DNA of 64,000 nucleotides. It comes from Oculina patagonica. Taxonomy: Eukaryota. The notes beneath the pieces are model-generated. The model was not told the DNA's origin. It worked only from the letters and a program-made list of their open reading frames with translations, and made no database searches. A program made the position numbers and the translations under genes. This document shows positions 9,743-61,565 of the stretch, in pieces. Within the stretch, counting starts at the first letter, position 1; each line of letters starts with the position of its first letter. The stretch lies in the NCBI RefSeq assembly GCF_052425735.1, contig NC_135761.1:21948001-22012000 (forward strand), written 5' to 3'.

Positions 9743-11147
9743 CTGTTTACTTAAATTGCACTGTAACTTCAAGGTAGAAATAGTTAAGGAGGGGAAAGGG
9801 AGTTTCGTCCTTAAAATTCTTTTATTTCGACAGTCTGTTTGTTGTCAGATTTCCTGTTCTTGGCCTTGCGTTGAAAGTTGAACCAGTTTTCCTGTCTCTT
9901 ACCTGGTTAGGTGGTACCATATTATACTGACGGGGATTAGGAGAGTAAAATCATTGTCTCGAACAGCTTCAGAACCTAAAACCGTTATTACAACTAAACA
10001 GTTTTAACATGGGCACGGTTACTAGCACAATATAAACGTTGTGAAGGAAAGACGCTCACCGTGGACAGTGATTGCGATGGATATTCTGTGACAGGTTTGA
10101 TTGTCACACATTCTTTAGTACCGTTTTCCTTTCAATTAAGATTACAGATTTAATTAGTTAGAACGTCACACGATCCCACAAGGCTTCAGAAGCGCACCGT
10201 GAGAATGAAAGAAATTCTGCGAACAGAACTATGTGTTATTTGGCTTTAATTAGTAAACATGATTGTTTTCTTTCATACTTTTAGAACATCTTCACGCAGA
10301 GCACAAATTGTTTATTTTATACCCTACAAGAACGTACATCGGGTGATTGAGCCCTCCAGCCTTGGCTAGCTGTATGTGAGATTAACGGCCATCGCAAGAT
10401 TCACAGGTATTGTGTAGGATGGTCTGGGTTGTCTCTGTTTCTAAATCTTCATACATATTTTTCGCCTCTAGTGATACAAACTACCTTTAACTTCTACAGA
10501 GCTGTCTGTTGCATTGGACGCTACAAGAACGTTTATTGGGGAATTGAACCCTCCTGTCTTGGTTGGCTGTATGTGAGATTTAACGGCCATTGCACAATCC
10601 ATAGGTACGGTACAGGTTTTCACTGTTTCAATATACGTTTTTTTAATTTTTTTTTCGCCTTAAGTGACGCCTTACTTTCGTACTTACCTTCAGCATGCGC
10701 ACAGCGGTCACTTATTTTGTTTTGTTCTGCACGGAGGAAGAAGAAGACGGCTAACTTACCTTATGTTGTGAAACGTGTCGTCTTTTTATTAAATTTAAGA
10801 CGGAATCAGGCAGGACTTCGAGTATTAAAAGGACACGGTTTTGTAACAAAATTATTTACATCTTATTCAGAAACTTCTGTGTCACTGTTTGAAAAAACTT
10901 ATGAAAAGATATCATTTTACCAAACGTCGAGGTGCACTGAACGCTTAAAAGAAAATTTAACCAAACAATCTTCATCTGAAAATGTACGTTCTCGTAGTTC
11001 TTATGGAATTTGGAAATCATGTTATAGGGCACTGATAAGAAATTATGTTGGTGCAATCATGAATAACTATACTTCAGTAGTGAGGAAAGGACCGAATTAG
11101 CCGTTTATTTGTGGAATTAATTATTTTTTTGTGGAATTAATTAAGTG

Positions 11148-11370
11148 AGTGACGTCATAGAGGCGTCAGTGACGTCATCAAAAATGGGGCGTAAATGACG
11201 TCATAAAATGGGGTGTAATCTAAAAATAGAAAAATTACGTCATTGGGGTGTAATCTAAAAATAGAAAAATTACGTCATTGGGGTGTAATCTAAAAATAAA
11301 AATTACATCATATCGGAGGGTAACCCCGCCTTGACCAATAGCCATAAAAGAAGCTGCTTGCAGTTCAGTC
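11148..11370 (+). promoter_or_regulatory. Terminal regulatory region of the Polinton: ATF/CRE sites, GC boxes, 35-bp tandem repeats, CCAAT box, TATA-like box, Inr; mirrored at ~16394-16616
   Basis: TGACGTCA x3 (11150, 11170, 11196) and TTACGTCA x2; GGGGTGTAATCTAAAAATA.AAA repeated 3 times; CCAAT at 11335; CATAAAAG at 11343; TCAGT at 11365, upstream of ATG 11402. Confidence 0.6.
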
Positions 11371-11401
11371 TATTCTCAGAGTTTACACCGTTCAGATCAC
11401 A

Positions 11402-11935
11402 ATGTACAGCAGTTATAATCAATTCTTTCAAGAGGGTTATGGAAATATCATATTACCCGATGACAGTGGAGATGAAAGCGATGATGAGAGCTCACAGGAA
11501 AGTGAACAGTCATTTAGTCAAGATTCTCAATCGAGCGAAGAAATAGACTCTTCCCAAGAACAAATGGAGCATATAGATCCCTGGTCGCGCATTCAAGATG
11601 AAGTCACTAGTCGTCACGAAGCCAAGCTCGAAACTCTGATAAACGAGTATGAACAACATGGAGATGTGTCTGAAGTGGCCCGTGTTAAGGCTGAAAATGC
11701 TCTGCTACCAGTATACAGGAAGGAGCTGAGAAAAGTTCTTTTGGAGTATTTACAGTGGATGCATGCAATGAGGAAAGATTCGACCTTCCGTAAAGTGATA
11801 GAGACCAAAAATGAATTGAAAGATACAGAGGGATATGATTGGTTAGAATCGACAGAACTCGCTATCGATAAAAAAAATAAGCGAAAATTCTTACTCAATC
11901 GGTTGTTTGTCAAACAAACTGTTCCCGAACACTAA
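11402..11935 (+). CDS. Polinton accessory ORF A (acidic Ser/Asp/Glu N-terminus, helical C-terminus), left arm, 177 aa
   Basis: Intact ORF with promoter-like elements upstream and AATAAA at 11993. Identical to the right-arm copy apart from an in-frame 9-bp insertion (KNK). Confidence 0.7.
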   Translation: MYSSYNQFFQEGYGNIILPDDSGDESDDESSQESEQSFSQDSQSSEEIDSSQEQMEHIDPWSRIQDEVTSRHEAKLETLINEYEQHGDVSEVARVKAENALLPVYRKELRKVLLEYLQWMHAMRKDSTFRKVIETKNELKDTEGYDWLESTELAIDKKNKRKFLLNRLFVKQTVPEH

Positions 11936-12798
11936 GTGAACTGTGCCTGTTAATCTTTTCTGGTGACACCTCTGTCAATGTTTTTAATAATCAATAAACG
12001 TATTTTAAAAGAGAAAAAACCTTCCTTCTTGTGTCTCGCGGTGCGCAACTTGTCTATATAAACGCCTATAGATGCTAATTTCTTAAGCAAACTCCACCAA
12101 GTTTATACCGTAATTCGCTTAAATGCTCATACGCGTTCTCTACCGTTTGAATTAAGATAAAACCAAACATGTGAAACATAGGTTTACAAGTCAAAAAAGT
12201 TGTACATCGATCAAATTTTTTTCACAAAATCGGTTCACTGAGCTGGTCTTACAATTTATTTTACTCGTAACTGCTCAATAACTCCATATTGCCAATGTAG
12301 TATTGCCGTATTGGCCGCTACGAATTTTTTGCTGTTTGTAATAATTGCTATTTGATTTTCTTGGTTGCTCTTTGTCACTCAACTGGTTAAATGATTTATT
12401 GATCTTATGAACTTAACGTAATAAGAAATTTTGAAATGGAAAACTTTTAGAAAGTTTTGACAGTAAGAAAGTTTACTTTAAAGAAATGTAAATGAACTGT
12501 TGACAGGTTTGAGTGTGAATTTTTCGCTCCGATAATAACCCTTGGGAAAAGCATGTTAGTAATGCCTTTGTGTTAAGCGAAACCCCTAATTCTGGAAAAG
12601 TTTAATGAATTTTTATGAAGTAAATAATAAGAGTTTTTTAAAGGAAATAAACTGAAGAAAATCACTTAATTTCCTCTTTTAATACACTGTTATTTATACA
12701 ATAGCCGTTGACATTACATTCTTTTAAACAAAGATTGCAAAAACAGACTTAAACCTATATGTCCGTGTCATCCAACAGCAAATGTTTATGCAAAAACA

Positions 12799-13173
12799 TT
12801 ACAGAGAAAGCCACCGTGGATGTTGACGTGTTGTTATTTTAGACCGTTTGCTAGTCTTGTCTGTTTTTCGAATGCTTTTACTTCTGTTTTTCAATAAATC
12901 CTTTGATTTTCTTGGTGTGGATAACTGGTAGTTAATGTCAATGCCTTGTTGTTGAATAGACGGAGGTATGGTACACGCTTTAAGTTTTTGGCTGTTCTCA
13001 GTGTTTTGATAGATGATTACTTTAACTTTAGGTTGTAGTTTTGCTTCTTGTAGCCACTTTCTTCTTTGATTGTGATCCAGCTGATGAACATTAGTAAGAT
13101 GGTTAGATAATTTCACGAGATATTTTGCTCCACATCCCGGAACCGGACAGTCTCGGCAAACTCTTCTAACCAT
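12799..13173 (-). CDS. Polinton accessory ORF B, C2H2-like zinc finger with a basic tail, left arm, 124 aa
   Basis: CPVPGC-x9-SNHLTNVH motif; K/R-rich C-terminus; TATATAA about 60 bp upstream. Confidence 0.7.
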   Translation of the reverse strand: MVRRVCRDCPVPGCGAKYLVKLSNHLTNVHQLDHNQRRKWLQEAKLQPKVKVIIYQNTENSQKLKACTIPPSIQQQGIDINYQLSTPRKSKDLLKNRSKSIRKTDKTSKRSKITTRQHPRWLSL

Positions 13174-13512
13174 GTTAACGGCATGAAATATTGACGCAAA
13201 TGAGAGAGTTTTGTTAATATCCTTGTGTTATATAGACGCTACTGAAGGTCAAAAAGGACAAAATGAGGTCAAAAAGGACAAAATAAGGACAACAAGGACA
13301 AAACAAGGACTAAAAGGACAAAAGGAGACACGAGGGACATTTAAGCTATATGTTTCGCTGCAAACGCGCGTGGAGAACGCGCGTGGAGAGAGCGCGCGCG
13401 TGTCATTTGAGAGATTTTTTTTTTCTTATCTATGTAAAAATCACTGAAAAATAAGTTAATAATTTCACGATAAAGGAAATCTCTAATTTCTCATTTCCAG
13501 AAAGATAGAACG

Positions 13513-13860
13513 ATGTTCGCTCTTGTTTTCCTAACGTTCATATTATTTCACTATTCTAACGCCTGTTTAGAGGGAAACTGTCGCTGCTATGAAGCTATGG
13601 AAGTAATCGACTGTTCACACAGAGATCTATATTCATTACCATACCCAAAGTTTGCCCTGGTGAACTATACCTCGATTTTACTGCGTGACAACAACCTTCG
13701 ACACCTGAATTTAACCCATCTATTCAAAGTGTTTCCACGAGTGATGGTTTTGGATTTGCGTGACAATGATCCGGTATTGTGCGATGATAATCCCTCATTT
13801 TCATGGTCTGTTTGCGATCTGAAGGCTTTTGATAACTCCCAGTGCTTGAAGTATAAGTGA
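13513..13860 (+). CDS. Signal-peptide LRR protein, left-arm version (115 aa; C-terminus derived from antisense loop sequence)
   Basis: Signal peptide MFALVFLTFILFHYSNA; LRRNT CLEGNCRC..IDCSHRDLYSLP; LRRs ILLRDNNLRHL and VLDLRDND. Branch point CTCTAAT and acceptor TTTCCAG (13500) just upstream of the ATG. Confidence 0.7.
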   Translation: MFALVFLTFILFHYSNACLEGNCRCYEAMEVIDCSHRDLYSLPYPKFALVNYTSILLRDNNLRHLNLTHLFKVFPRVMVLDLRDNDPVLCDDNPSFSWSVCDLKAFDNSQCLKYK

Positions 13861-14260
13861 GATTGTTTTGACGATGGGTGGGCGAATTTGTTGAGAGGAC
13901 GGCTGTCGTAATCTCTGTGCCGGTATTAGTAGAATTACAATCAGAGATTATAATAATCGACTTGGAGTTGTGGTACCTTTCTATATCATCACACAACACC
14001 GGATCATTGTCACGCAAATCCAAAACCATCACTCGTGGAAACACTTTGAATAGATGGGTTAAATTCAGGTGTCGAAGGTTGTTGTCACGCAGTAAAATCG
14101 AGGTATAGTTCACCAGGGCAAACTTTGGGTATGGTAATGAATATAGATCTCTGTGTGAGCAGTCGATTACTTCCATAGCTTCATAGCAGCGACAGTTTCC
14201 CTCTAAACAGGCGTTAGAATAGTGAAATAATATGAACGTTAGGAAAACAAGAGCGAACAT
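13724..14260 (-). CDS. Signal-peptide LRR protein with a Ser/Thr-rich stalk, right-arm version (178 aa; natural sequence to ~13771, then truncated by the fold-back)
   Basis: Same N-terminus as the left copy, continuing LCDDIERY..IISDC and a T/S-rich stalk (STNTGTEITTAVLSTNSPT). Confidence 0.75.
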   Translation of the reverse strand: MFALVFLTFILFHYSNACLEGNCRCYEAMEVIDCSHRDLYSLPYPKFALVNYTSILLRDNNLRHLNLTHLFKVFPRVMVLDLRDNDPVLCDDIERYHNSKSIIIISDCNSTNTGTEITTAVLSTNSPTHRQNNLTYTSSTGSYQKPSDRKQTMKMRDYHRTIPDHCHANPKPSLVETL

Positions 14261-14599
14261 CGTTCTATCTTTCTGGAAATGAGAAATTAGAGATTTCCTT
14301 TATCGTGAAATTATTAACTTATTTTTCAGTGATTTTTACATAGATAAGAAAAAAAAAATCTCTCAAATGACACGCGCGCGCTCTCTCCACGCGCGTTCTC
14401 CACGCGCGTTTGCAGCGAAACATATAGCTTAAATGTCCCTCGTGTCTCCTTTTGTCCTTTTAGTCCTTGTTTTGTCCTTGTTGTCCTTATTTTGTCCTTT
14501 TTGACCTCATTTTGTCCTTTTTGACCTTCAGTAGCGTCTATATAACACAAGGATATTAACAAAACTCTCTCATTTGCGTCAATATTTCATGCCGTTAAC

Positions 14600-14974
14600 A
14601 TGGTTAGAAGAGTTTGCCGAGACTGTCCGGTTCCGGGATGTGGAGCAAAATATCTCGTGAAATTATCTAACCATCTTACTAATGTTCATCAGCTGGATCA
14701 CAATCAAAGAAGAAAGTGGCTACAAGAAGCAAAACTACAACCTAAAGTTAAAGTAATCATCTATCAAAACACTGAGAACAGCCAAAAACTTAAAGCGTGT
14801 ACCATACCTCCGTCTATTCAACAACAAGGCATTGACATTAACTACCAGTTATCCACACCAAGAAAATCAAAGGATTTATTGAAAAACAGAAGTAAAAGCA
14901 TTCGAAAAACAGACAAGACTAGCAAACGGTCTAAAATAACAACACGTCAACATCCACGGTGGCTTTCTCTGTAA
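14600..14974 (+). CDS. Polinton accessory ORF B (zinc finger), right arm
   Basis: Protein identical to 12799-13173. Confidence 0.7.
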   Translation: MVRRVCRDCPVPGCGAKYLVKLSNHLTNVHQLDHNQRRKWLQEAKLQPKVKVIIYQNTENSQKLKACTIPPSIQQQGIDINYQLSTPRKSKDLLKNRSKSIRKTDKTSKRSKITTRQHPRWLSL

Positions 14975-15837
14975 TGTTTTTGCATAAACATTTGCTGTTG
15001 GATGACACGGACATATAGGTTTAAGTCTGTTTTTGCAATCTTTGTTTAAAAGAATGTAATGTCAACGGCTATTGTATAAATAACAGTGTATTAAAAGAGG
15101 AAATTAAGTGATTTTCTTCAGTTTATTTCCTTTAAAAAACTCTTATTATTTACTTCATAAAAATTCATTAAACTTTTCCAGAATTAGGGGTTTCGCTTAA
15201 CACAAAGGCATTACTAACATGCTTTTCCCAAGGGTTATTATCGGAGCGAAAAATTCACACTCAAACCTGTCAACAGTTCATTTACATTTCTTTAAAGTAA
15301 ACTTTCTTACTGTCAAAACTTTCTAAAAGTTTTCCATTTCAAAATTTCTTATTACGTTAAGTTCATAAGATCAATAAATCATTTAACCAGTTGAGTGACA
15401 AAGAGCAACCAAGAAAATCAAATAGCAATTATTACAAACAGCAAAAAATTCGTAGCGGCCAATACGGCAATACTACATTGGCAATATGGAGTTATTGAGC
15501 AGTTACGAGTAAAATAAATTGTAAGACCAGCTCAGTGAACCGATTTTGTGAAAAAAATTTGATCAATGTACAACTTTTTTGACTTGTAAACCTATGTTTC
15601 ACATGTTTGGTTTTATCTTAATTCAAACGGTAGAGAACGCGTATGAGCATTTAAGCGAATTACGGTATAAACTTGGTGGAGTTTGCTTAAGAAATTAGCA
15701 TCTATAGGCGTTTATATAGACAAGTTGCGCACCGCGAGACACAAGAAGGAAGGTTTTTTCTCTTTTAAAATACGTTTATTGATTATTAAAAACATTGACA
15801 GAGGTGTCACCAGAAAAGATTAACAGGCACAGTTCAC

Positions 15838-16362
15838 TTAGTGTTCGGGAACAGTTTGTTTGACAAACAACCGATTGAGTAAGAATTTTCGCTTATCGAT
15901 AGCGAGTTCTGTCGATTCTAACCAATCATATCCCTCTGTATCTTTCAATTCATTTTTGGTCTCTATCACTTTACGGAAGGTCGAATCTTTCCTCATTGCA
16001 TGCATCCACTGTAAATACTCCAAAAGAACTTTTCTCAGCTCCTTCCTGTATACTGGTAGCAGAGCATTTTCAGCCTTAACACGGGCCACTTCAGACACAT
16101 CTCCATGTTGTTCATACTCGTTTATCAGAGTTTCGAGCTTGGCTTCGTGACGACTAGTGACTTCATCTTGAATGCGCGACCAGGGATCTATATGCTCCAT
16201 TTGTTCTTGGGAAGAGTCTATTTCTTCGCTCGATTGAGAATCTTGACTAAATGACTGTTCACTTTCCTGTGAGCTCTCATCATCGCTTTCATCTCCACTG
16301 TCATCGGGTAATATGATATTTCCATAACCCTCTTGAAAGAATTGATTATAACTGCTGTACAT
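15838..16362 (-). CDS. Polinton accessory ORF A, right arm, 174 aa
   Basis: Mirror copy of 11402-11935. Confidence 0.7.
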   Translation of the reverse strand: MYSSYNQFFQEGYGNIILPDDSGDESDDESSQESEQSFSQDSQSSEEIDSSQEQMEHIDPWSRIQDEVTSRHEAKLETLINEYEQHGDVSEVARVKAENALLPVYRKELRKVLLEYLQWMHAMRKDSTFRKVIETKNELKDTEGYDWLESTELAIDKRKFLLNRLFVKQTVPEH

Positions 16363-16753
16363 TGTGATCTGAACGGTGTAAACTCTGAGAATAGACTGAA
16401 CTACAAGCAGCTTCTTTTATGGCTATTGGTCAAGGCGGGGTTACCCTCCGATATGATGTAATTTTTATTTTTAGATTACACCCCAATGACGTAATTTTTC
16501 TATTTTTAGATTACACCCCAATGACGTAATTTTTCTATTTTTAGATTACACCCCATTTTATGACGTCATTTACGCCCCATTTTTGATGACGTCACTGACG
16601 CCTCTATGACGTCACTCACTTAATTAATTCCACAAAAAAATAATTAATTCCACAAATAAACGGCTAATTCGGTCCTTTCCTCACTACTTACTTCAATCTT
16701 TTGCTTTAAAAAAAGTAGAAAATAGCGAAGTATGACTAAAATTGTTGTTGTAT

Positions 16754-16894: not shown

Positions 16895-19269
16895 ATGGAC
16901 TCTGTCTTAACTTTTTTTCATGTACTTTTGTCTGACAGGTCTAGCAGAAATGGTGGCGACGATTTCGCCATTCGCGTCCCAAAAACGTGAAAGTTGTAAT
17001 AGACGAACACCACTTTAAACGCGGCACTCGAAACGGGAATCCTATGTCACGTCCAAACAGCGATGTTCCCAACGCGGTCATAGAAGATGGATTTGATCCC
17101 ATCCATCGGAACAATCTCCCTCCGATGAAACCCCTGCAGTCTTACTTCCCCAGGGGCGTCCCTTCCCCAACGAGAGACGTCTTGCCAGAGGAATCACTGC
17201 GGAGTTTTTTTTACCAGGGCTCTGGGTACCCGAACAACTCGCTATGTACCTCAGGAGACCCTGAGAGCGATTCAGAGGCAGATGACAGTTATGTAAATGT
17301 TAATATCATGGCAGACATGTTCAGAAATTGCATGACTCCCTTGGTCCCTTTGTCCACACGACGAGGTCATTAGAGAGTAAAATAATGGGAGTCAAACATA
17401 ACGAGTATAAACACTAGCACTTTGCCTTGGCCTGGCACATTTTTCTCTGCACATACAAACTTCTCTTAACTCTTTATGTTTATCAAAGATCTAAAAACTT
17501 CTTACTGTATTAACGAACAATGGCCGGGACAAGCTATTTGTGTGTGTGTGTTTTTTTTAATGTTACACGGAAAAGCGCGAGAGCCTATCAACCACCGTGC
17601 TCTGGAGGTTTGATCTTCTGGAAAAAAATATTTTCAAGTAAAGAACAGAATTCTTTATTTTAGCATGGTACAAGAGAAATTCTTCCAAAGAAAGTACTGG
17701 AGAATGTTCTCAAAGCAGTAAGAAGAAGGTTTTGCAAAGATCTGAAGAGAAGAGTCATAAGCAATACGCCTTTATGTTAAATAGAAGACGAGTTATCATT
17801 TTCAATCATACGACAAAACTTGTAAAGCACGTTTTAAACCTCTATTATCTTCATTAATAAGTAGTCATGCAAATTGCTAATAAGGATAAATACATCAATA
17901 AGAATAAGGATAGATACATTAAATCCAGGATAAATAGTGAAAGCAAAACATGAAAATGTGAGAATTAAAAAATCATTTTAGATCAATATGGTGTAATTGA
18001 TGGTGAGGTAGATCTGTTTGAATATAAATAGCTTAAAAGCTGGAAGAGGCGTGATGTAAAAAATTGATATGAAAGCAATCGATTAAACACAAGCTTAAGG
18101 AGCGACAATGTTTAAAATTCAGTAGATGCTTGAAAATATGATAGGCTTTATCACGTGTGGAAAAATGTCGGGTTGTTTCGCTGACATAACAGGCTTCAAA
18201 GCTCGCACATGCAAACTTACAAACTACACATGCACGCGAGCAAAGCCAGCCGTGATTCGGGTCTTTCGATTCACGCCAAACAACTACAACTTATTACAAC
18301 TGGGTAGTAGATAGTGTGGGCTGACAATGATGCCTTTTTTTTTTAGCAAAACAACCCCTTTCCATAAGATCTTGCTGAAAATAGAAAAGAAATCAATGAA
18401 ATAAAAATAAAATCAACAAGACTGCCACTAAATTTTATTGACATTGCAAGCAATTAAATAACCATTTTCCCTTCATTATGTTAAGTTTTGCCACTTTATT
18501 ATCATTGGCGTTCATTAAATTATTTTTCACGAAAGAACCCCAACGTAACCCTCGAAGGAGGGAGAGTAACAGAAAAAGCATTCAATCAAAAATAATAAAA
18601 AAGTCCGAGAAATAAAAATATTTCTCAAACGCTCTGTCATTATAAAAATCCGGACGAAAAACGTTTTTTCTTCCTTTCAACTTAGCCTCAACGAGGAAAA
18701 TGAGAGACGTGTTTATTGATGGGCAATTTCTAACCTGACCCTTACGCCGCGAGAAAAATGACGCCTTATTGCAAGTGAGGAAATTTCCAAACCTGTGATT
18801 TGGAAAATGCAACCAACAGTAATTCTTGTGAGCGATGTATAATGAGACGAACAGCGTAGTCTCGACAACAAAACAATCTTACGATTTAAAGTGAAATTTG
18901 GTGCTATCATCTTGAATTTACCTAAACTTTATCAAAAGAGCACTTTTCCACAGTGCAGCAACATTTTGCTAAATGTTTAATGCAAAAATGTACAATATTT
19001 CACATGGGTGAAGGCGCATAAGCCAACATTTGGACTTGTTTTATACTTTTTCCTGAACCGATCCGATTATTTTTCTTCCTGCTCTTCATATCCTTACTTT
19101 TGTTAGAATACGTTTTGACTTAATCATTGGAAAAACCTGAAAAGGGGACCTTAATCAATTACAGGTTTATTGGCTTCTTTACGCACAGGTTTTGCAACAA
19201 AAACGGATCGTGTTTTTAGGAACTAATCTTATCTAAGACCAGCATATTAAGCTTTTACTAGATTACATT

Positions 19270-20680
19270 TCATATGGAACTCACTTTATCATATAGCAGT
19301 ATATTAACCACGTGCTAGATTATTACGTGTTACTTTTTTGCCGCGTAGGTTTCTTTTTTTCTTTCTAACGTCGTGAGTTCCTTGTGGAACTCGTGTTATG
19401 TAAGGGCAGTATATTGACCTTGTGCTAGATTATCCTAACTTACTTGCGTGTTTGGATTATTCGTTCTTACTTGGTTGGTGAGCTCCATATGGAACTCACT
19501 TTCAAGTTAACATAGATCAGAATATTAACTTCGTGCTAGATTATTTTGTGTTACTTTTTTGCCGGGTAAGGTTACTTCTTTGTTAAGTAGTGAGTTCCAT
19601 ATGGAACTCATGTTATATTAGGGCAGTATATCGACCTTATGCTAGATTTTCATTTTCTTACTTATTTGCGTGTTTGGATTACTCGGTCTCACTTGGTTTG
19701 TAAGTTCCATGTGGAACTCACTTTATCATAGATCAGAATAATATTTATTAACCTTTTGCCCGATTATTTTGTGTTACTATTTTGCCGATGTGTCGTCTTT
19801 TTACTATCATAGTCCAGTATATTTACCTTGTGCCAGATTATTTTTGTGTTACTTTTTTTTTTGCCAGGCGGGAGTCTTTTTCCTTATTTTACGACTTGTG
19901 AGTTACTTGATAATTCTCTCTTATTTGGTTGGTGAGTTCCTAATGGAACTCATGTTATCTGACGGCAGTCTATTGACCTCGTACTGGATTGTTCTGTCAT
20001 TTTTGATTGGTGAGTTCCTTATTGAACTCATGTTATCTTAGAACAGGCTACTGACCTCGTACTAAATTATTCTGTCTTACTTGGTTTGTGAGGTCCTAAT
20101 GGAAATCATGTTAACTGACGGCAGCCTATTGACCTCGTACTTGATTATTTTGTCTTATTTGGTTGGTAAGTTCCTTATACTCATGTTATGTCGCGACAGC
20201 CTACCAACTTTGTACTGGAATTTTCTGTCTTGTTTTGTTAGTGAGTTCCGTATTGAACTCATGTTCTCTGACGGCAGCCTATAGACCGCACACTGGTTTA
20301 CTCTGCCTTATTTGGTTGGTGAGTTCTTTATTCTCGTGTTATCTCACAATAGCCCATTGACGTCGTACTGGAATTTTCTGTCGTGGTTGGTTAGTGAGTT
20401 CCTTATGGAAGTCATGTTATCTGACGGCAGCCTTTCGACCTCGTACTGAAATTTTCTGTCTTATTTGGTTGGTGAGTTCCTTATGGAACTCACGTTATGT
20501 GACGGCAGACAATTTACGTCGTACTGGATTATTCTGTCTTACTTGGTTGGTAAGTTCCTTATGGAAGTCATGTTAACTGACAGCAGGCTGTTAACTGAAG
20601 ACAGCCTAATCACCCCGTTCTTCATAATTCTCTCTTATTTGGTTGCTGAGTTCCTTATGGAACTCAGGTTAACTGACGAA
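19270..20680 (+). repeat. 78-bp satellite, + orientation, degenerate towards the left
   Basis: Units of TTGGTTGGTGAGTTCCTTATGGAACTCATGTTATCTGACGGCAGCCTATTGACCTCGTACTGGATTATTCTGTCTTA. Confidence 0.9.
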
Positions 20681-35131: not shown

Positions 35132-37884
35132 TATAACTAAACCTCTACACAGAGGTACCTCGAAAGAACCGGCACGATAAATTATTTTTTGAAGACCCAA
35201 ACCTCCCAAAATTAAACGACGCTGACCTAGAGAAGCTAGAATTGCCACTCACCAAGCAAGAATGTTTTGAAACGCTTAAAATAAGTGCCAAAGGCAAATG
35301 CCCAGGAAGCGACGGATTCACTGTAGAATTCTATTTACATTTTTGGTCCGTCTTAGGAGATGAAATGGTTGAAAGTTTTAATTATGCTCTAATACACAAA
35401 TGTCTAAATATAACTCAGAGACAAGGAATTATCAAAGTTGTGCCAAAAAAGCGGAAAAACAAGCTATACTTAGAAAACTGGAGACCAATATCTTTATTAA
35501 ACACTGACTATAAAATAATAACAAAGGCCATAGCAAGCAGAATCGCCAACTTTCTCCCCAAACTTATCCATGACGACCAAACCGGTTACGTCAAGGGGCG
35601 ATACATTGGCCAAAATATTAGGCTGATACAAGACATAATGAAAATAACATCTTTAGAAAATATACCAGGCATGGCAATATTCGTCGATTTTAAAAAAGCC
35701 TTTGATTCGGTTGATTGGCAGTTTTTATCCAAAGTTCTAGAAGCGTTTAACTTTGGGCCACAAATTCGCGACTGGATTAAAACTTTCTATACCGACATTA
35801 CTAGCTGTGTTATCAACAATGGACATGCCTCCGAATTTTTCAGCTTACAAAGAGGAGTCAGACAAGGCTGTCCCTTATCTGGAATCTTGTTTGTACTTTG
35901 TGCAGAAATCTTAGCGAACGCAGTTAGGAATAATAAGAATATTAGAGGAATACAAATTTATAACAAAGAATACAAAATATCACAATATGCAGATGACACT
36001 ACTGCATTTGTATCCGACGCGTTGTCAGCGCAGAACTTGTTCGAAACATTACGCGCCTTTCAAGAGATTTCAGGACTAGAAATAAATAAGTCCAAAACTG
36101 AAGGAATGTGGATAGGGTCACGGAGAAAGGACGCCTCGACACCTTTTGATATAGCTTGGCCTTCAGAGCCGATATATGCACTAGGAATCTATTTCTCTTA
36201 TGACGAAGCTGAAGCTTTCAAAAAAAATTTTGAACAAAAACTACTGTCTATGAAGAACCTTCTTAATCTTTGGCAATCAAGAAACCTCACGTTGTACGGT
36301 AAAATAACCATTCTTAAAAGCCTCGCTCTCTCGAAGCTAGTCTATAATACATCGGTACTTACTTTTCCCCGAGAATTTGAATCTTCAGTTCAAGCAACCA
36401 TTACTCAGTTTGTTTGGAACAACAAACCTAAAATTAAACATACCACCATGATAGGCCCGAAAGTTAAGGGTGGCTTAGATCTGCCAGATTTCGAAATAAT
36501 GAACAACGCTCTGAAAGTCACTTGGGTAAGAAGGCTGCACGAAAGCAATGAAAATGCAAGCTGGTGCCATATACCTCTCACACTATTAAAACAGGTAGGA
36601 GGTATTTTCCTACTAGAATGCAACTATGATTTAAAGTACCTCAAACTAGATATACCTATACAATTTTATAAGGATGCCTTAAGCATTTGGCAAATCATAA
36701 ATAATCATACTCCAGCAAACAAAGAACAGATTCTCAATGAAATTCTGTGGAACAATCGGTTTATTAAGATCGAAGGCTTCTCTGTTTATTACCATAGTTG
36801 GCATGCTGCAGGAATAACCAAAATCAAAGACATTTTCTACGAAAACAACTTCCTGACATTTGATAAATTTTGCCGCAAGTTCGCCATCAAAACAAATTTT
36901 CTTACTTATTATGGCTTATGCAACTCTATCCCCCAAAACTGGATCCGCTTGTTAAAAGAACTTGACACCGACGCACCCACTTGTTTAGAATATGCAGAGA
37001 AAATTCCTTTAGACAAGCTTTCATGTAAATCAGCTTCGAAACTTCTAATCGGGCTGAAATTCATACCTCCCACAGCAGAACAAAGAATGTGGCAAGCAAA
37101 CTTTGATAAGAAAACTATTAAAACTATATACAGCATTCCTTTTAAAGTGACCAAGGATATTAGGCTCGCTATATTCCAATTCAAAATTATACATTATATC
37201 TTGCCAACTAATGCAACCCTTTTCAGAGATAAGATCATTCAACATGATAAATGTCATGTCTGCGAGCAAAAACAAACCTTACAACATCTTTTTGTTTCTT
37301 GCCCGGACGTGCAATCTTTCTGGCAAACCTTTTCCCACTGGTGGAATGTTAAAAACGACGATTTTATTGACTTGAACGACAAAACCATAATATACGGCTT
37401 CACAAACAACTTTGGCCAACAACTTGGTTTAAACCTCTGCCTGATAATCGCCAAGTATTACATCTACTCTGCTTCAAGAGAACAAGAACAGTACTATTTC
37501 GAAGCCTTCCTTGCTTTCCTCAAAAGTAAACTATCTATTGAAAAGAGTACGTGCAAATCACAAATCATTCTTTAAATAAAACGTAAGCTAACCATTTCCT
37601 ACAAATGTAACTAAGTAAAAAACAAACTTGTATTACAATTTGTCCGGCAAACCATGTTATCACAAAAAAAAAAAAAAAAAAAAAATCTTACCAGATAGAA
37701 GCCCTTATTTGACTTTTGCATTCTTGTATTGAATTTTTTTCCTTTTCTTTATTTTAGTCTGTAACTTACAAGTCAATGTAATCTAAGCCGTCCTTTTGTT
37801 TATTCGTGGTTGTAAATAGTAACTAAATGTAAATTATTTTTTGAACTGTTCAATAAATGTTTGCAAACAAAAAAAAAAAAAAAA
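35132..37884 (+). mobile_element. 5'-truncated L1/Tx1-clade non-LTR retrotransposon (RT ORF ~35137-37575 intact)
   Basis: KCPGSDGFTVEFY, NWRPISLLNTDYKI, DFKKAFDSV, RGVRQGCPLS, QYADD, C-terminal CHVC..HLFVSC zinc motif; poly(A) tail; ~13-bp TSD ATATATATAACTC (35119-35131 / 37888-37900). Confidence 0.92.
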
Positions 37885-45775: not shown

Positions 45776-48700
45776 TGTGAATTTCACGGCCAGTCCAGTC
45801 CGTATCAGAGTTTCTTAGCCAACGTACATCTCTAAGCCATGCGTGTCTACGCAGCCCTACATTTGGTGGAGGCAGCGTGGCCGAGTGGTTAGAGCGCCGG
45901 ACTTGTAATCCGGAGGTCGCGGGTTCAAGTCCCGTTCTGACCACTAGCTGGATTTGTTCTCGGTAGTCCCGAGTTCAACTCCTCGGCCACGCTTGTAAGT
46001 AGCCAACTGGTCTGCCTCCTGCCAGTTGGGATTTTTAACCATGTTATGTTATGTTCATTTAATATATTTGTTTCATATTGGCCCTGAAAAGCCCCATTGG
46101 GGGAGTGGTCAATTAAGTATTATTATTACTATTATTATTATTATTTCGTCCTACGTTTCGCTTCGAAATTCTCTGAAAATTCGTAACTTTCTTCGCGAAC
46201 TTCGCGAACTAACTAACCGCTCCCAATCTAACTACAAAGTCAAAAATACTCGTTCCCACAATCAAAAAATGTCACGTGCATGCAAAACACGGAATTATTC
46301 AGAGTTACGTTGCCAATCGCGCCCACGTGCATTTAAGCACGAAAGACACGACAGCGGCCCCACAAACGTCAAAGTTTAAGCGTTTGTTAATCCTCGTAAG
46401 TGTCTTTCATTCCTGTCCATCTAATAGGCACAGCTTTACGATTGGACGAAGCAACTCCTTGCTTGAAGTCTTCACCTTAGCGGATCGCACCTTTGAATCT
46501 CTTCCCTCAAAGACCTCAGTTACACGACCCACAGTCCACTTGTTGCGAGGGACATTCTCTTCCAAAACGAGCACCAGGTCGCCCACTCTAACCTTCCTTT
46601 GGTCTCTTAACCACTTTCCTCTTTCACTCAGACTCGGTAGATATTCATTAATCCACCTCTTCCAGAAGACGTCGGCTAGGTATTGGACCTTTCTCCACTG
46701 TTTCCTGCCCAAATGGTCTTCCTTGACGAAAAGCCCTGGTGGCAACCCAGACACCTTCCTTTGCAGCAAGAAGTGATTGGGGGCCAATGCTTCCAAATCG
46801 GCAGAGTCATCTGATGCTTCTACGATTGGACGATTATTCATAATGGATTCCACTTCAGTTAGCAGTGTTCGCAACGCAAATTCACCGAGCAATCTATCTC
46901 CTGCGACAGCCTTCAGATGCTTTTTGGTAGTCTGCTCTAGTCGCTCCCAGACCCCGGACATGTGAGGTGCTGCTGGGGGATGAAGGGTCCACTTGACTTC
47001 TCTTTGTTGCAATTCTTGGCAAATTTTTACGTGGTTCCACCTATCGATGGCTTCGTTGAGTTCGCGCTCCGCGCCAACAAAGTTAGTGCCTCTATCTATC
47101 TGATCTAATTTCCTTGGGAGGACCCCTTCGGCTAATGAACTGTCGCAAGGCCATGATGAAATCGTCAGTTTCCAGTGAGGGCACAAGTTCGAGGAAAACA
47201 GCTCGCGTGGACAGACAAGTGAAAATGCATCCCAGCGCTTTGCTAAACCGCGGCCCCACGTAACCATTAGTGGACCGAAAAAGTCGACACCAGAGAACGT
47301 GAAGGGCGGATTGTACGGTTCTAATCTCTCTCTAGGAAGGGGAGCCATAATCTGCTTCATAGGCCTCTCGTTCAATCTGCGACACTTCACACAATTTCTA
47401 ATGGTGCTCTTTGCTAAACCTCTGCCTCCAGAACATTTTCCTTGTTTGAGCCAGGGTCTGCTCCTTGCCGGCATGGGCTAAACTTTCGTGGCAATGACGG
47501 ACGATCAGCTGACTGATGTGATGGTTCCTTGGAAGTATTACGGGATGTCTTTCGTTATACGACAGCACTACTGCCTCCTCTAAGCGACCTCCGACACGAA
47601 GAATTCCTTCCGTCAGTACCGGTTTCAACTTTACAAGTTTGGACGACGTCTTTACTTCCCTGCCGGCCTTGAGGTCTCTCAGTTCTTCTGCAAAGCTTTC
47701 AGCCTGAACCAACCGCATGAGAAACAGTGTTACCTCTTCTAACTCTTCCGTGGTTAGTGTTCGTGTCGTTGGGGAGACTTCCCGGGACCTTAGCCAGTAG
47801 CAGAATCGCACTAGCCAAGCAAGCAACGTAACGTTGCAACTTAAACCAAGAGCTGTAGTGCGATATCATCTCGTAAACGGTCGGTTTGCTCGCGCAACGA
47901 GCATCTGAGTGAACTCTAACGTGAGGGTTTACAGTCCTGATTGAATGAATTTGTGCTTCATTTCGAACTTCAGGATCGTCATGTGGAACTTCGCCAATCT
48001 CAGTTTTGGGCCAGTTGTTCTCCGATTGCCACAAGTACTCTGGTCCTTTCCACCAGCGATGCTGACTTGATAACCTTTTAGGCTTTAAGCCACGCGAGGC
48101 GTCGTCGGCTGGGTTCAACCTTCCAGGACAGTGTCTCCATTGGTCCGGCCTGGTAATCTCACGAATTTCAGCAATTCTGTTAGCTACGTAGGTGTTGAAA
48201 CGCTTTGTTTCATTCTTGATGTACTGCAAGGTAGTTTGAGAATCGGTCCAGAATACGACTCTGTCAATCTTGTAGGTTAACTCATCCCTGCAAACTTGAT
48301 AAATCTTGGCAGATAACGTTGCAGCTTGTAACTCGAGCCTTGGGATTGAAATAGCTCTCACTGGCATCGTCTTTGATTTACCAACCAGAAACGAGCACTG
48401 AATGGACCCATCTTCATAAACGAACCGCAGATAGGAGCACATGCCGTAACCCTCGTCTGACGCGTCTGAGTACTGGTGGAGAGAGATTTCCTTTACTTCT
48501 CCTTGTAGCTGGAGATAGCATCTTGGTATTTGAACTTGCGATAAAGCTGATAATTCAGACTTCCAACGTTCCCAGTGGGCCAGCTCAAACTCTGGGACAG
48601 GATCGTCCCAATCCAACTGCAGTTTCCACAGCCGCTGTATAATCTTCTTTGCTTCTAGCACCACTGGACAAACGAAACCCACAGGATCGTAAAGGGAACT

Positions 48701-51700
48701 AATAGTCGACAGGATACCTCGTTTCGTAGCTGGTTTGTCTGGCTTTAAGACTTTAAACTGGAAAACATCTGTTTCGATATTCCACAGGACTGCCAACGCT
48801 CTCTCGATCGGCAGCTGATCCAAATCCAGGTTGAGAGTTGGCTGTGCTCGTTTATCTTCAGGTATGTTGGCTAACAGCTCACGAGAATTACTTGTCCATT
48901 TAGTCAGACGAAATCCGCCCCTCTCGAGAAGAGACATCAATTCGTGCGCCAGTGAAATTGCCTTACTGGTCGTCTCCACAGCCTTCAGCAAATCGTCAAC
49001 GTAGAAATCTTCTTGGACAGCCCTAACGGCTTCTTCGCTAAAGTCGTTCTTGTTATCTTCAGCGGTTCTTTTCAGGCAAAAGTTTACACAGCTCGGAGAA
49101 TCTTTAGCGCCAAAGATGTGACGGACCATCTGGTACTCCCCAGGAGGTCTATTTAGATCGCCTTCCTCCCACCACAAGAAACGGAGAGCGTCAGCGTCTT
49201 CAGCAGGTACTTTCACTTGAAGAAACATGGATTGTATGTCTGCAACAAGAGCGATGCGTTCCTGTCTGAATCTCAGCAACACACCAAACAGACTGTTCGT
49301 TAAATCAGGCCCTCGATTCAACTGGCTGTTGAGGGAGACTCCATCATGATTTGCTGCTGCATCAAATACTACTCGAATTTTCCCCGGTTTTTGCGGGTGA
49401 AAGACACCGTGGTGCGGTAGATACCACGTCCTGGGACTTCGAGCCTCCGCCTCCACCTCGGTCAGCTTTCTAGCATAGCCTTTTACCAAAAGGTCGTCCA
49501 TAAAGTCCCGGTATTTGCATAGCAACTGCTCCTCTTTGCACAACTTTCTTTTCAGAGAGCGAAGTCTAGCTTCGGCGGTCATTTTGTTGTTTGGCAACCA
49601 CGGATTTTCGTACTTCCAGAGCATTCTGACCTCATAACGGCCGTCTACTAGGCGAACAGAACTGTTCAGCTTGTGTAAAGATTCTCGATCTTCGACTGAC
49701 ATCCCCTTCTTACTGCTACTAATGCATTCAATGTTTTCAAATCCAAGAAAATGATTCATCTGTTGGTCCAACATCTGGCTACCATACTTTAGAAAGTTCA
49801 CGTTTACTTTGTCAGATGTTATTCCAATGCTGCTGTTAAGCGGTCCCAGAATGGACCACCCCAAAAGGGTCCGGACAGCATACGGTTCTCCGGCTCTTCC
49901 AACGCGAACTTCTTCGTGTATCTGAACTTCAGGGACGTTTGCTCCTATAAGCAAGGTAACTTCTTCCTCGTCAATCTCTGGCATTGCTATCCCATTTAGG
50001 TGTTCCCATTTCGACAAGTCCTGTGGTCTGGACGAGCTCACATTGAGATTCTCAACAACCTTGACGTCGTGAATCTGAATTCGGTGGCCTTCTGAATCTT
50101 CTATTGGTAAGACTACTAGGTCCACTTTGCCTACACGCACAGTTGTCTCGCCAGTCAAGGTACACACCACCAACGACTCGAAACTCTTTATTCTCAAACT
50201 TAGCTGGTCAGCGGTAGGTTTGGCAATAAACGAATCCTCGCTTCCCGTGTCGAGCAATGCCCATGTGTTCACCGTTTGCCCATTCTCCCCCTCCAGTCTC
50301 ACAGGTACCACTTGCAGGGCAACTTTATGCGACTTAAAGGCTGTCTGGCTGCATGCTTTGTAAGATGCAGACTTAGCAAAGTTCACCACGCTGACCGTTG
50401 CGATGCCGCTGGCAGCTTGGTCAAAGGTGGGGACACTGGATGTACCACTTTCAGCTGTCATTACGTTCGCAGACACTTTAACTTGATCATGGTTTTGACT
50501 AGGAGAACCTGAGGTTCTACCATCGCCCGTCATTACGCTGGCAGATACTTGTTCCTGGCTTTGGCAAGGGGAATCAACACAATCCGACGCAGCGTTGTGT
50601 AAGAGGACATGATGTTTCTGTGAGCACAGGTTACACTTCGATTTGAAAACACATTGAGTAACCAAATGTCCTTTCCTCAGGCAATTCAAACAAAGCCCTC
50701 TTCCTCGAACGAAAATCTTTCTTTGTCTCAGAGTTAGTTTCTTAAATTTACCGCAATCCTCCAAGTAGTGGGATTCCTGGTAGTTCATACATTTTGCTGA
50801 TCGACCTGTATTGCGTGGATCCTTCTGCTGAGGTGAACCAGATGTGAGCTGCGTTGCTAGCGTTGTCACTTTACCTTCGGCTCCAGGCGCGCTAGGTACT
50901 TTGGGATTTTTCCTGCCAGGTTTGATCGGAGCTCTGCTTGTTTCTCCAATTCGACCAAAGATTGGATCGTTTATAGCATCTGCGCGTTTCTCAATGAACT
51001 CCAACAGATCTTTGAAACTTGGTAGTGTCCCTCGCTCACGGATCCGCTGAGCCTCGTCCCTCCATTTAGCTTGATGCGCAGTAGGAAGCTTTCCCGCCAT
51101 TTTTCCCAGATTGGTGAGATTCATCTCAGACAAAGCATTCATTGCAACCAAAGTCTCATACAAGGTCCTGCTACGATCCGCAAACTCTCTTAAGCCTTCT
51201 TTGTCACTGTTCGAAATGTTTGGTCCTTCAATTAAACCATCAACGCATGCTTTCACTATCATGTGAGGCTGGCCAAAACGTACCTCAAGTAATCGCACGG
51301 CCTTCCTAACTCCACCGGGCATGCCTTCAAACCCTTCCACTGCTTTTCTCGCTTTGCCTTCGAGGAACTGCAATAAACGAGACATCTTTTGCGAATCAGA
51401 CAGATTCTGAGAGTCCACCATTTGATGGAAACGCGCCTTGAATTTGAAGAACTCGCTTGGATCTCCGGAAAACTTAACTACCTCCAGTGGGGGTAGGGTC
51501 GCCCCGGTCGCAATCAAGTTCATATTGGTGACAACACTCTGAAGAATACGTGTTTGTAACTTTCTCAGACGATCCACCATACTCCCTTTTAGGCTGAGCA
51601 AGAGGGCGGACATTGGGATCCTTAGTCGAACTTGAGATCTTTTCAGGGGGTATTGGTTTTGGGGCAAAGACGCGCGGCTGAGGCTCAGGCATATCCTTTC

Positions 51701-52310
51701 TTTGATCGAGATGCTGCCTTCCCTTCTCTACCTCAAGCTCAGCGAGTGGATCATCGATGCTCGACGTTTATGAATCCAATTGCTCATAAAATCGGGTTTT
51801 TACTCGGGCTAACTCGGCCTCGTCTTCAGCGTCAGCTATTTCATTCTCCAACTGCAACATTTGCTGTTCCAATCTTCTCTCTTTTGCTCTCCTTAATTGC
51901 GCCAATCTCACTTCGGCCATTACGCTTTCAATTGCAGCGTTTTCACGTAACCTTGAACTTGAACTACGACTTGAACGCCTGGATTTCCGAGAACCGCCCG
52001 AAACAGAACTCCGTGCATCTTCCACACGATTAGAACGGTCTTTAGTAACAACTGTTTCCGTTCCTCTATTCGTAAAGTTAGTACGAGTCATGAATTGTTC
52101 GATCAGAAAACTGTATCTTTCGTAAGCTCGAGCTCGATCATCAAAACGATCGCTTTCATTCGCCTTTTCTCTCTCACCAGGCAAATGCTTCATAAGTACA
52201 GTTGCTCGTGTACAAAACAATACTTTGACCATTGATCCTTCAATCGACGACTAAGCTCCATTACTTCGCCAGCATGGCGATAATCCTTGAGCACTTCGTC
52301 CAGACGGCTA
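45776..52310 (-). mobile_element. BEL/Pao LTR retrotransposon, frameshifted, 5' LTR lost; 3' LTR 45776-46353
   Basis: gag with CCHC knuckles (CLNCLRKGHLVTQC), protease LLDTGS, RT YLPHH/FYVDD, RNase H SDAS, integrase GVDFFGP after RNase H. LTR bounded by TGT...ACA with a PPT-like GGGGCCGC adjacent (minus strand). Confidence 0.92.
45864..46145 (+). mobile_element. Full-length tRNA-derived SINE inside the BEL LTR
   Basis: A-box TGGCCGAGTGG, B-box GGTTCAAGTCC, (ATT)n tail. Confidence 0.85.
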
Positions 52311-58621: not shown

Positions 58622-61034
58622 ACGTGACACTGCATTTTGAGTATAAATTTAGAATTACAGTTTAGTAGAAACTATTTCCTTTCTTTACTGAATCAACCCA
58701 CATAATCTAACCACACAGGATTTACATCATGAATTTCCTATATGTCACACCACCACACCTTGTATTAGAATCATAAGAATTTCCTTCTATTGTTTGTTTC
58801 CTTATAAAAGAAGTGCAGTTAGTTAGTTTAATTCAATAGTTCAAAGTGTTCAAGCTAGACCTGCACTTACAAGCTGAGGACCCCTTGGTCAAGTTCAGTA
58901 CTATTGCTTGTGACCTAAGTCAGTGATTCATTTCACTAAGGATTTTGGTATGTCACGTTTGACCTTGTTATTATGTTTACAGTTTAGGTTTATTAGTTCA
59001 ATACTACAGTCAACATGTACTTATCTTAAGCCAATTGTCTAGTCTTTGTGTGAATCCTCTGTTGATTCATATCCAAATTGTATCCAGAAGAACATTGCAT
59101 ATGTAGTTTCTAAAACATTATATCTACATGAAACTCATTTTGTTACACAATACTGCAAGAGTTCATTGTTGAAATTAGATATTTCACTGTTAGTCTAGCT
59201 TTGTTTAATCCAGCTATGACGACAGATGTTGTCCTGTCACAAGTTTACAGTTTTTCTTAGTTTTGTGTCAAAGAATCATTTAAATCACCATCAAGATTAG
59301 TTTATTTCATTGTTTTGCTATGTTGAGCTATTATTCGGTATATAACACTTGTTTTTAGTTCATTCACATTTAGTTCTAAGAATAGCTCTCTAATAAGTGT
59401 CAGTTTTATTTCTAGATAAGAGGATTAATATTTTACTTAGTGTCATGCAATGTTTATTGTTTCGTCATGCAATACTTTGTAGGAATTTAGTGAATGATCA
59501 TTTGCAAGACTCTAGTTGTACTATTATTTCTGTATTATATTTTGATTATTTTATTGTAATATTTTTAGTGATTTGTTATTGTAATTTATTCTTTTCAGTT
59601 TGCAATCACCCTTTTTCTTTTTGTAATCTGTATTCCTGCATAAATAAATTTTATTGTGGCTATAAGTCTGATTCGTTGTTCACTAACAACACCAGAACCT
59701 GCCTCGGTCACATTTGGCGCTGCGAGCAGGATACAAAAAGAAACCAATTTAAAAAAATCAGCAATTTTAAAAAAAGGGTGGTTGCAATAACAACACAAGG
59801 ATCAAATCACCATGACTACAGAGGAGTTATCAACCAAAGTGGATGAGTTGACTAAGATGTACAAAGAGGCAATGGAAGAACTAAAGGCCCAGAAGGAATC
59901 TACCAACCCGACTCAAGTGTCATCCTCAAAACCAGCAACAGGAAGTGGCACAAAGCAGAAACAAATTGTTGTCTTTCCCCGGGACAAGAAGATTAAGAAC
60001 TTCACTGGGAAAAAGACAGAAGGCGACCAACCAGTTGAAGACTTTATAGAAGAACTCAGGACAACCTTCGAAGCGAGAGAAATGACCTCACCTGAGAAAG
60101 TGGACTTCATAATGTCTCACCTGGATGGACCAGCTAAAGAAGAGATACGAATGTACAGCAAGAAGGAGCGAAGCAACCCAGACTTTCTTCTAGATGTTCT
60201 GGCACAAGCATTTGGAGAGAAAAGGTCCAGCTCCCAACTCCTGAAGATGTTCTATGAGCGCAAGCAGAAAGAAAACGAAACACTTCGAGGGTACTCGTAC
60301 AGATTGAATGAACTACTCAAGCGCGCCACTAAAGCAGATCCAAAGGCAGTCCCCGACCCAGAGAAGACTCTACGGGACCAATTTGCAGACAATGTGAGGG
60401 ATCCCTTTCTTAGGAAGGAACTGAAGAAGTTCATCAGAGAGCGTCAACCCCCATTCTTACATTTGAGGGAGGAAGCATTACGTTGGTCAGAAGAGGAGGA
60501 AAGACGACAGCGTATCATGCCCAGGCCCCAATCATCACAGGAAGTAGCGGCTGACATCCCAGATGAGAGTTCTTAGTGTAGTGCTAGCTCCACCGCCACC
60601 CCCATGGATAAGGTATTGGAGGTCCTGCTCAAGCAGCAGAAGTCCCTAGAAGAACTGACGAGTTCGATTAGAGATATCAAGTAGCCAAGGACCCATATCC
60701 CGCCCAAGGAATGGAGTGGACGGCGCCCTGATATTGTTTGTTTCAATTGCAACAAGAAGGGACACATTGCCAGAAACTGCCAGGTGAATGATGACCGTTT
60801 TGTCAGGAGAGGACCACCACAAGGAAGACAGCGCCCTGACAAGTCGTCAAACTAACTCCCTCTGCCACAAGGAGCCAAGTGACAGCAGGGGACAACAATG
60901 GCTCAAATATGGATATGTCAAGAATGTACGAGAAAGCAGTTGGAGAGTGCCCAGTGACCTCAGTACGACTGGATGGAGTAGACGTACCTTGCCTCTTGGA
61001 CTCAGGATCTGAAGTATCCACAATCACAGAAGAG

Positions 61035-61156
61035 ATGTAATGTATATGAAATGATTCATATATGAACTGCGGATGTATATGAGAGTGATAAATGATCGTC
61101 GCAGTGAATTTCCAATTTAAGCAATTGGAATAAAGAAGCCTGAAAAAAAAAATTCA

Positions 61157-61190
<34 letters not shown>

Positions 61191-61276: not shown

Positions 61277-61310
<34 letters not shown>

Positions 61311-61531: not shown

Positions 61532-61565
<34 letters not shown>

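Follow-up and report, generated by a model that had tools for sequence, protein, structure and literature searches.

Palindromes formed at short inverted repeats are known from the ribosomal DNA of Tetrahymena and from mammalian gene amplification, and linear replicons with protein-primed replication give rise to defective genomes with long inverted repeats, such as those in incomplete adenovirus particles and the hairpin or palindromic derivatives of the linear killer plasmids of yeast. Here, we analyze a palindrome of 5613 bp in the genome of Oculina patagonica, the centre of which is an interrupted gene for a leucine-rich repeat (LRR) membrane protein. It lies in a window of 64,000 nucleotides (NCBI RefSeq assembly GCF_052425735.1, contig NC_135761.1, positions 21,948,001 to 22,012,000 of the forward strand), 11 kb and 47 kb away from the window ends; positions below are those of the window. 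We consider it rather probable that this palindrome arose from a Maverick/Polinton-type element as a defective fold-back (“snap-back”) derivative.

The kind of event is already known, both for fold-back palindromes that start from short inverted repeats and for snap-back defective genomes of linear replicons. In multiple displacement amplification with the phi29 DNA polymerase, a family B enzyme of the protein-primed type, chimeras are mostly inverted, and displaced 3' ends prime at 2-21 nt of complementarity in the same branched molecule (PMC1855051). At our locus as well, a released 3' end would have re-annealed on the same molecule and been extended, which gives an inverted product with a deletion or spacer; the phi29 chimeras, however, form in vitro with random primers, whereas the Oculina palindrome has a genuine terminus on both sides, was integrated between copies of a target-site duplication and is part of an inherited genome. 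In yeast, fold-back priming at natural inverted repeats beside a double-strand break, with fill-in by Pol delta, leads to palindromic duplications (PMC10622511). The likeness lies in the short natural inverted repeat with unique spacer that forms the centre, and in a fill-in to the end of the molecule that replication then turns into a duplex; the difference is that chromosomal fold-backs are dicentric or terminal rearrangements, and not a 5.6-kb mobile element between transposon termini. The defective adenovirus and killer plasmid genomes share the inverted duplication of one end, the same origin or terminus at both ends and the loss of internal genes, but they are free molecules in infected cells or cultures, whereas the Oculina palindrome is integrated and its priming repeat can still be read. 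Snap-back or copy-back genomes of RNA viruses also arise when a polymerase returns on its own product, and they keep near-complete self-complementarity and the terminal replication signals, but they consist of RNA, do not imply a pre-existing inverted repeat and do not integrate (PMC13506859). The terminal hairpin-forming palindromes of virophage-like elements of protists are a related idea, but a different feature. We found no earlier description of a snap-back Maverick/Polinton derivative in the literature searched, an absence that is no proof.

The palindrome (Table 1) has mirrored arms, the same terminus at each end and a short unique centre, as expected of a fold-back palindrome. Its large inverted repeat pairs 11076-13789 (2714 nt) with 13984-16688 (2705 nt). 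The gapped alignment of the arms comprises 2705 aligned positions, with five mismatches and one indel of 9 nt. All five mismatches are transitions (left-arm positions 11361, 12208, 13614, 13776 and 13782). Two of them lie within the 19 loop-proximal nucleotides, which bears out the clustering next to the loop that a preceding sequence-only reading of the window had pointed out (binomial P ~5e-4, for a 19-nt window picked post hoc). Each arm carries an acidic open reading frame (ORF) of 177 or 174 amino acids, a Cys/His-rich ORF of 124 amino acids and the 5' part of the LRR ORF.

When the minus-strand LRR ORF served as a protein query, 28 relatives were found, from ENA, JGI or Logan assemblies, which are 44-66 % identical according to the search table; the loci of seven of them were retrieved and examined. 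The full-length relatives are type I membrane proteins of 190-263 amino acids. They have a signal peptide and a cysteine-rich N-cap, followed by leucine-rich repeats, a second pair of cysteines, a stalk rich in Ser and Thr and a transmembrane segment, and they end in a short acidic tail. The LRR label is based on matches of the family profile to the LRR domains of Slit/Slitrk (E = 5e-4 to 3e-3). The minus-strand ORF aligns with these relatives from residue 1 to about residue 163, a stretch that comprises right-arm sequence, both 19-mers and the entire loop, in agreement with the earlier view that the gene runs naturally through the loop on this strand. Past the left 19-mer, the relatives enter their transmembrane segment (...VYHRAIPYIYTLVGTLLFIP in P0007, ...AYDRAIPYIYSLIATLLFIP in P0005), and the window ORF proceeds with DHCHANP... 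from the copied arm to an early stop. The break is equally sharp in the DNA: aligned without gaps to the P0007 and P0005 genes, the minus strand of the window is identical at 25/30 positions in the 30 nt up to 13772, after 21-24/30 in the preceding 30 nt, and at 7/30, the random level, in the 30 nt past 13772. The alignment of the minus strand through the loop, together with the end of homology at 13772, identifies right arm, loop and left 19-mer as the native colinear piece, and the left arm outside the 19-mer as the copy. The plus-strand ORF was also considered as the native reading and rejected, since no relative has anything that corresponds to its read-through of the loop. The sequence-only reading had predicted that the parental gene would continue through the left 19-mer and then diverge, probably into a transmembrane segment, and had named a divergence before the left 19-mer as evidence to the contrary. 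The predicted continuation is found, and the earlier divergence is not, in relatives with 52-66 % identity, which stand in for the immediate parent.

The inner ends of the arms are formed by the two 19-mers that the sequence-only reading had singled out, and its description of them proved correct. Seventeen of their 19 positions are paired; at the other two, 13776/13997 and 13782/13991, the bases are A.C and C.A on the plus strand, but T.G and G.T on the minus strand. The left 19-mer is identical to P0007 at 17 of 18 nt, both mismatch sites included, and both wobble positions of the window are G.T wobbles in P0007 as well. The corresponding repeat halves of the relatives form 10-12 Watson-Crick pairs out of 19, against a chance expectation of about 5. 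If the left half were a perfect copy of the right one, it would code for His and Thr where the window codes for Arg and Ile. Relatives that retain the transmembrane segment mostly have Ile at the site of the window Ile, and otherwise Leu or Val, and the two relatives that are closest in this stretch have Arg at the site of the Arg; the minus-strand residues YHRTIP resemble YHRAIP in P0007 and YDRAIP in P0005. As the mismatch bases of the left 19-mer match P0007, the inverted repeat is native and was imperfect before the palindrome formed, as had been proposed, and the mismatches are not later mutations.

Within the native segment 13771-16688, this pair is the sole inverted repeat of at least 17/19 with a spacer of up to 500 nt. 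Neither 60 shuffles nor the interior (15 kb) of the relative L006 contained an inverted repeat of 17/19 quality. The turn of the palindrome thus appears to fall exactly on the single good natural inverted repeat near that terminus. Relatives carry another base at the position that corresponds to 13771, so the native repeat may comprise 18 rather than 19 nt, with 13771 as the first copied base. Considered alone, with its natural loop of 194 nt, the DNA stem has an energy of -11.6 kcal/mol if the minus strand forms it and of -8.4 kcal/mol if the plus strand does, a difference of 3.2 kcal/mol. The G.T pairs are consistent with the assignment to the minus strand discussed below, yet they are not the reason for it.

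Read inward, the element begins with AGTAGTGAGGAAAGG... on both sides, and this AGTAGT... terminus carries AGTAGTGAGG... The flanks beyond the TACTTC duplication are unrelated to each other. One duplication around both termini argues for a single insertion. The tandem repeats are confined to the outer ~240 nt of each arm, and the rest of the arms is unique and gene-bearing. Most of the tandem-repeat units hold a TGACGTCA-like or TACGTCA motif, and the units may serve a terminal or transcription factor as binding sites.

Table 1. Coordinates of the palindromic element and its parts in the window, and termini of three related elements.
Feature	Position or size	Strand	Remarks
Whole palindromic element	11076-16688	.	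5613 bp; non-autonomous, Maverick/Polinton type
Left target-site duplication	11070-11075	.	TACTTC, 6 bp
Right target-site duplication	16689-16694	.	TACTTC, 6 bp
Left arm	11076-13770	+	inverted copy of 14003-16688; putative newly synthesised half
Left 19-mer, repeat half b	13771-13789	-	native LRR coding sequence, residues YHRTIP; putative priming 3' end
Unique loop, 194 nt	13790-13983	-	codes for cysteine cap and Ser/Thr-rich stalk of LRR protein; aligns with relatives
Right 19-mer, repeat half a	13984-14002	-	codes for PVLCDDI, a motif conserved in relatives (NPLLCDD[V/I] and similar)
Right arm	14003-16688	-	native terminus-proximal segment of the parent element
LRR membrane-protein gene	13724-14260	-	truncated once; transmembrane and cytoplasmic part absent; ORF enters copied arm, chance stop
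Mirror copy of 5' part of LRR gene	13513-13860	+	115-aa ORF, enters loop in non-native sense
Terminal tandem repeats	11094-11311	+	20-, 26- and 35-bp units with TGACGTCA-type motifs; mirror copy 16453-16670
Acidic ORF, 177 aa	11402-11935	+	mirror copy 15838-16362 (-), 174 aa; in-frame 9-nt indel between copies
Cys/His-rich ORF, 124 aa	12799-13173	-	identical mirror copy 14600-14974 (+)
Relative L002	6 kb		terminus AGTAGTATACC...; 6-bp duplication GACCTG
Relative L006	15.6 kb		terminus AGTAGTATAAGAAGGG...; 6-bp duplication AGAAAG
Relative L007	12.5 kb		terminus as in L006; 6-bp duplication matches at 5/6 positions

Mavericks/Polintons are recognized by terminal inverted repeats, 5'-AG...CT-3' ends and 6-bp target-site duplications. 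Polintons are defined by the combination of a protein-primed polymerase and a retrovirus-like integrase (PMC5499653). The AGTAGT termini and the 6-bp duplication of the window element recur in the relatives L002, L006 and L007. L006 encodes an rve integrase with chromodomain in an ORF of 365 amino acids (PF00665, E = 2.7e-13), and a protein of 853 amino acids, many homologues of which either have a PF03175 domain (“DNA polymerase type B, organellar and viral”) or bear the name DNA-directed DNA polymerase. These homologues come from corals, sea anemones, molluscs and a spider; the best named match is an Oculina patagonica protein with 85 % identity. The 853-aa protein itself has neither a Pfam polymerase match nor a PDB sequence match. 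In the relative L001, the polymerase gene apparently falls into three ORFs and has at least two interruptions; one piece, which is 93 % identical to the 853-aa protein of L006, matches PF03175 with E = 2.3e-5 and 23.9 bits, just below the cut-off of 25.8. Integrase and type B DNA polymerase (PolB) in relatives that share the termini, together with the AG...CT ends and the 6-bp duplications, place the element in the Maverick/Polinton lineage. It resembles described members in its AG...CT termini, its terminal inverted repeats, its 6-bp duplication and its relatives with rve integrase and PolB of the protein-primed type, but it lacks both enzymes and the capsid genes and consists of just two mirrored copies of one 2.7-kb end (PMC5499653, PMC11414722, PMC8097293). 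Homologues of the acidic and the Cys/His-rich ORF of the window are present in L002, where the acidic gene is in two ORFs. The Cys/His-rich ORF homologues adjoin the LRR gene in L002 and L006, in a gene order unlike that of the window. Besides their first terminal bases, L007 and L006 have only the region from the LRR gene to the polymerase in common, and no parent-like end was gained from this comparison. A hint of a capsid module in L006 is limited to one weak Pox_A32 match (E = 0.071, 179-aa ORF) in a Pfam scan of the ORFs of L006 only.

Together, the data suggest the following model. The parent would have carried a small gene for an LRR membrane protein about 2.4 kb inside one terminus, and this gene would have held an imperfect inverted repeat of 18-19 nt, with 17 Watson-Crick and two G.T pairs on the coding strand and a spacer of 194 nt. 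In a strand that ran in the coding direction from a 5' end at the terminus (16688), the 3' end would have come to lie at the distal repeat half, the left 19-mer. This 3' end would then have annealed to the proximal half, the right 19-mer, of its own strand, or of another strand with the same polarity, and would have been extended back to the 5' end, thereby recreating the terminus. Copying of the self-complementary strand would have produced a duplex with the same terminus at both ends, in which the two wobbles were fixed as differences between the arms, and an integrase supplied in trans would have inserted this duplex as one unit, with a 6-bp duplication. Because DNA is extended at 3' ends only, and the minus strand of the native piece has its 5' end at terminus 16688, the extended strand must have been the minus strand. 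An integrase can act on a molecule whose two ends are identical, which would explain the single duplication. Snap-back within one molecule cannot be distinguished from pairing with another strand of like polarity, be it a displaced strand or a sister strand. The event presumably took place on a free linear copy before integration. The 3' end may have belonged to a nascent strand that the protein-primed polymerase of the element had begun at the terminus, or to a resected broken end that was filled in by host enzymes; the two are indistinguishable here.

Several points weigh against this model. The immediate parent was not found when the LRR protein was searched against viral and metagenome contigs, nor when a terminal 27-mer and a 22-mer were searched against the same collections, and the best protein relatives are just 52-66 % identical. 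The window element has neither a polymerase nor an integrase of its own; without an integrase gene, it is non-autonomous. A single duplication around both termini would be expected equally from a rearrangement of the integrated parent in place, and the sequence gives no date for the fold-back relative to integration. The protein-primed replication (“self-synthesis”) of Mavericks is itself only a proposal (PMC11414722). The minimum free energies of the whole 232-nt native stretch are nearly equal for the two strands, with -23.8 kcal/mol for the minus and -23.1 kcal/mol for the plus strand (a difference of 0.7 kcal/mol). Finally, a G.T orientation of both central mismatches on the minus strand has a probability of P = 0.25, and the other three arm mismatches are G.T on the minus strand in two cases and on the plus strand in one. 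The earlier claim that the wobbles reveal the strand of origin thus stands for the strand itself, by the polarity of the 3' end, but their orientation does not serve as proof.

What the model places on a free molecule could also have happened in the chromosome. In an integrated element with short terminal inverted repeats, the 3' end of the minus strand would have changed templates at the 19-nt repeat while the host replicated or repaired its DNA, and would have copied the right arm backwards, until a homology-guided return switch in the terminal inverted repeat completed the replacement of the left part of the element by a mirror copy. The pairing geometry and the product would be the same as for a fold-back on a free copy, the duplication would stay intact, and the terminal repeats of the relatives, with 215-600 bp, could guide the return switch; moreover, host fold-back or template-switch inversions are documented at natural inverted repeats (PMC10622511). 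However, this scenario needs two switches and the loss of the entire left part of the element, the arm identity shows no discontinuity at a plausible inner edge of the terminal repeat, and a free molecule would gain its second terminus automatically. We therefore regard a rearrangement in situ as unlikely, but as an explanation to be taken seriously. Much less probable is an originally perfect palindrome in which the two mismatches are later point mutations, for example mutations that escaped arm-to-arm gene conversion near the spacer. It would fit that the arm differences are all transitions (5/5) and that both changes are synonymous in the LRR copy of the left arm, but the two bases of the left 19-mer are those of P0007 at the homologous sites, YHRTIP parallels the relatives where a perfect copy would code for Thr at the site of the Ile, homology extends to 13772, and the mismatches cluster, all of which brings this explanation close to refutation and leaves it with hardly any credibility.

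Foldback-type transposons (FB, Galileo) have long, internally repetitive terminal repeats, encode a P or other cut-and-paste transposase in their autonomous copies, and typically make duplications of 7-9 bp. As Foldback-like elements (Galileo) exist in animals, and as the relative L007 has terminal repeats of at least 1.76 kb, the palindrome might belong to an ordinary transposon family with long terminal inverted repeats, or it might result from two independent head-to-head insertions, in both cases without snap-back. The single duplication that encloses both termini speaks for one insertion, however, and the features of the Foldback class were not found: the arms are unique, gene-bearing and not internally repetitive, the duplication has 6 bp, and the relatives carry integrase and PolB. 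The centre is an interrupted gene that makes sense in one direction only, and the arm boundary lies on a native inverted repeat to the base, so that we give this alternative next to no credence. A technical origin, as a fold-back chimera that entered the assembly from whole-genome amplification or from the preparation of a long-read library, deserves consideration because phi29 amplification yields such inverted junctions at short complementarity (PMC1855051), and because the question was weighed from the assembled sequence. It is nevertheless very improbable, since the mirror symmetry ends exactly at the termini of the element, the flanks differ and have only the 6-bp duplication in common, and since their formation the arms have come to differ by three further substitutions and the 9-nt indel. 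In an amplification or assembly chimera, the symmetry would be expected to extend into the flanks or to break off where a contig ends, and a target-site duplication would be missing.

The arms and the relatives provide some further observations. The sole indel between the arms (11868-11876 versus ~15893-15897) has 9 nt, leaves the frame of the acidic ORF intact, lies in an A-rich run of this ORF and looks like replication slippage that postdates palindrome formation. An exact-protein look-up with the 124-aa arm ORF gave no match, and a Pfam scan of the arm ORFs gave none above noise (LRRNT, E = 0.57; E = 0.068 for the relative P0014). Between the acidic and the Cys/His-rich ORF, the segment 15149-15318, which has its mirror copy in the left arm, is ~74 % identical to part of both terminal inverted repeats of L001 (L001:6015-6202 and L001:19077-19256), which suggests that the end region of the parent may itself have been a mosaic. 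The terminal inverted repeats of L007 measure at least 1.76 kb (L007:5534-7292, L007:16226-18013), compared to ~215 bp in L006, despite identical first bases; end regions in this Maverick lineage thus appear to differ greatly in length. The polymerases at L006:11004-13565, L007:11251-13497 and in L001 have a weak Endonuclease_7 match near the N-terminus, and in many polymerase homologues C2H2 zinc fingers form part of a fusion protein; such accessory domains are unusual for this type of polymerase. Among relatives with short LRR ORFs, no recurrent fold-back at the same latent repeat was seen, as L008 and L009 are without a gene-centred palindrome. In L008, small near-perfect palindromes flank the short LRR ORF (L008:5336-5979, with arms of ~300 nt and a loop of 47 nt, and L008:7114-7419, with arms of 150 nt and a loop of 6 nt). 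Their ends are unrelated to the AGTAGT termini, and they look like separate insertions that resemble miniature inverted-repeat transposable elements (MITEs).

The window as a whole is animal-type DNA with ~38 % G+C and several retrotransposons. A BEL/Pao-type long terminal repeat retrotransposon occupies 46276-52232 on the minus strand, with ~47 % G+C compared to ~38 % around it; its ORF of 1322 amino acids has DUF1759, an aspartyl protease, a weak reverse transcriptase match and Peptidase_A17, and is followed by an ORF of 355 amino acids with DUF5641. At 35242-37575 on the plus strand, an ORF of 777 amino acids with RVT_1 and zf-RVT indicates a retrotransposon of the long interspersed nuclear element type. 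The region 59397-63532 (plus strand) has a Gypsy-type look, with a gag-like ORF (PNMA / Retrotrans_gag) and then an ORF of 769 amino acids with reverse transcriptase and RNase H, and may overrun the window; the adjoining ORFs at 53450-56102 have a weak reverse transcriptase match only. Several copies of a short palindromic motif (GAGTTCCATATGGAACTC-like), ~230-310 nt apart and with many low-identity inverted-repeat matches, lie at 19268-20493 and may be a tandem array of a MITE-like unit.

The palindrome illustrates how non-autonomous, long-armed Maverick derivatives may originate in one step. For annotation, it calls for caution, because a mirrored half-gene yields two spurious variants of an LRR-protein ORF. 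Its primer footprint is unusually legible and bears on the unproven model of Maverick replication. One end copied back, a turn at a native imperfect repeat and insertion as a unit make up the by-product expected of a linear replicon with end-initiated replication. We suggest, tentatively and with some doubt, that the palindrome preserves, as a fossil in the genome, a defective snap-back genome, which arose from a Maverick that replicated as a free linear molecule from its terminus and which has kept the footprint of the primer, the two native G.T wobbles. If this is true, the Maverick integrase inserts replication by-products that bear two identical ends, and the locus would be sequence-level evidence for a terminus-initiated, strand-displacing replicative stage of Mavericks, a stage for which the centres of palindromes would offer a purely descriptive way to look in genomes.

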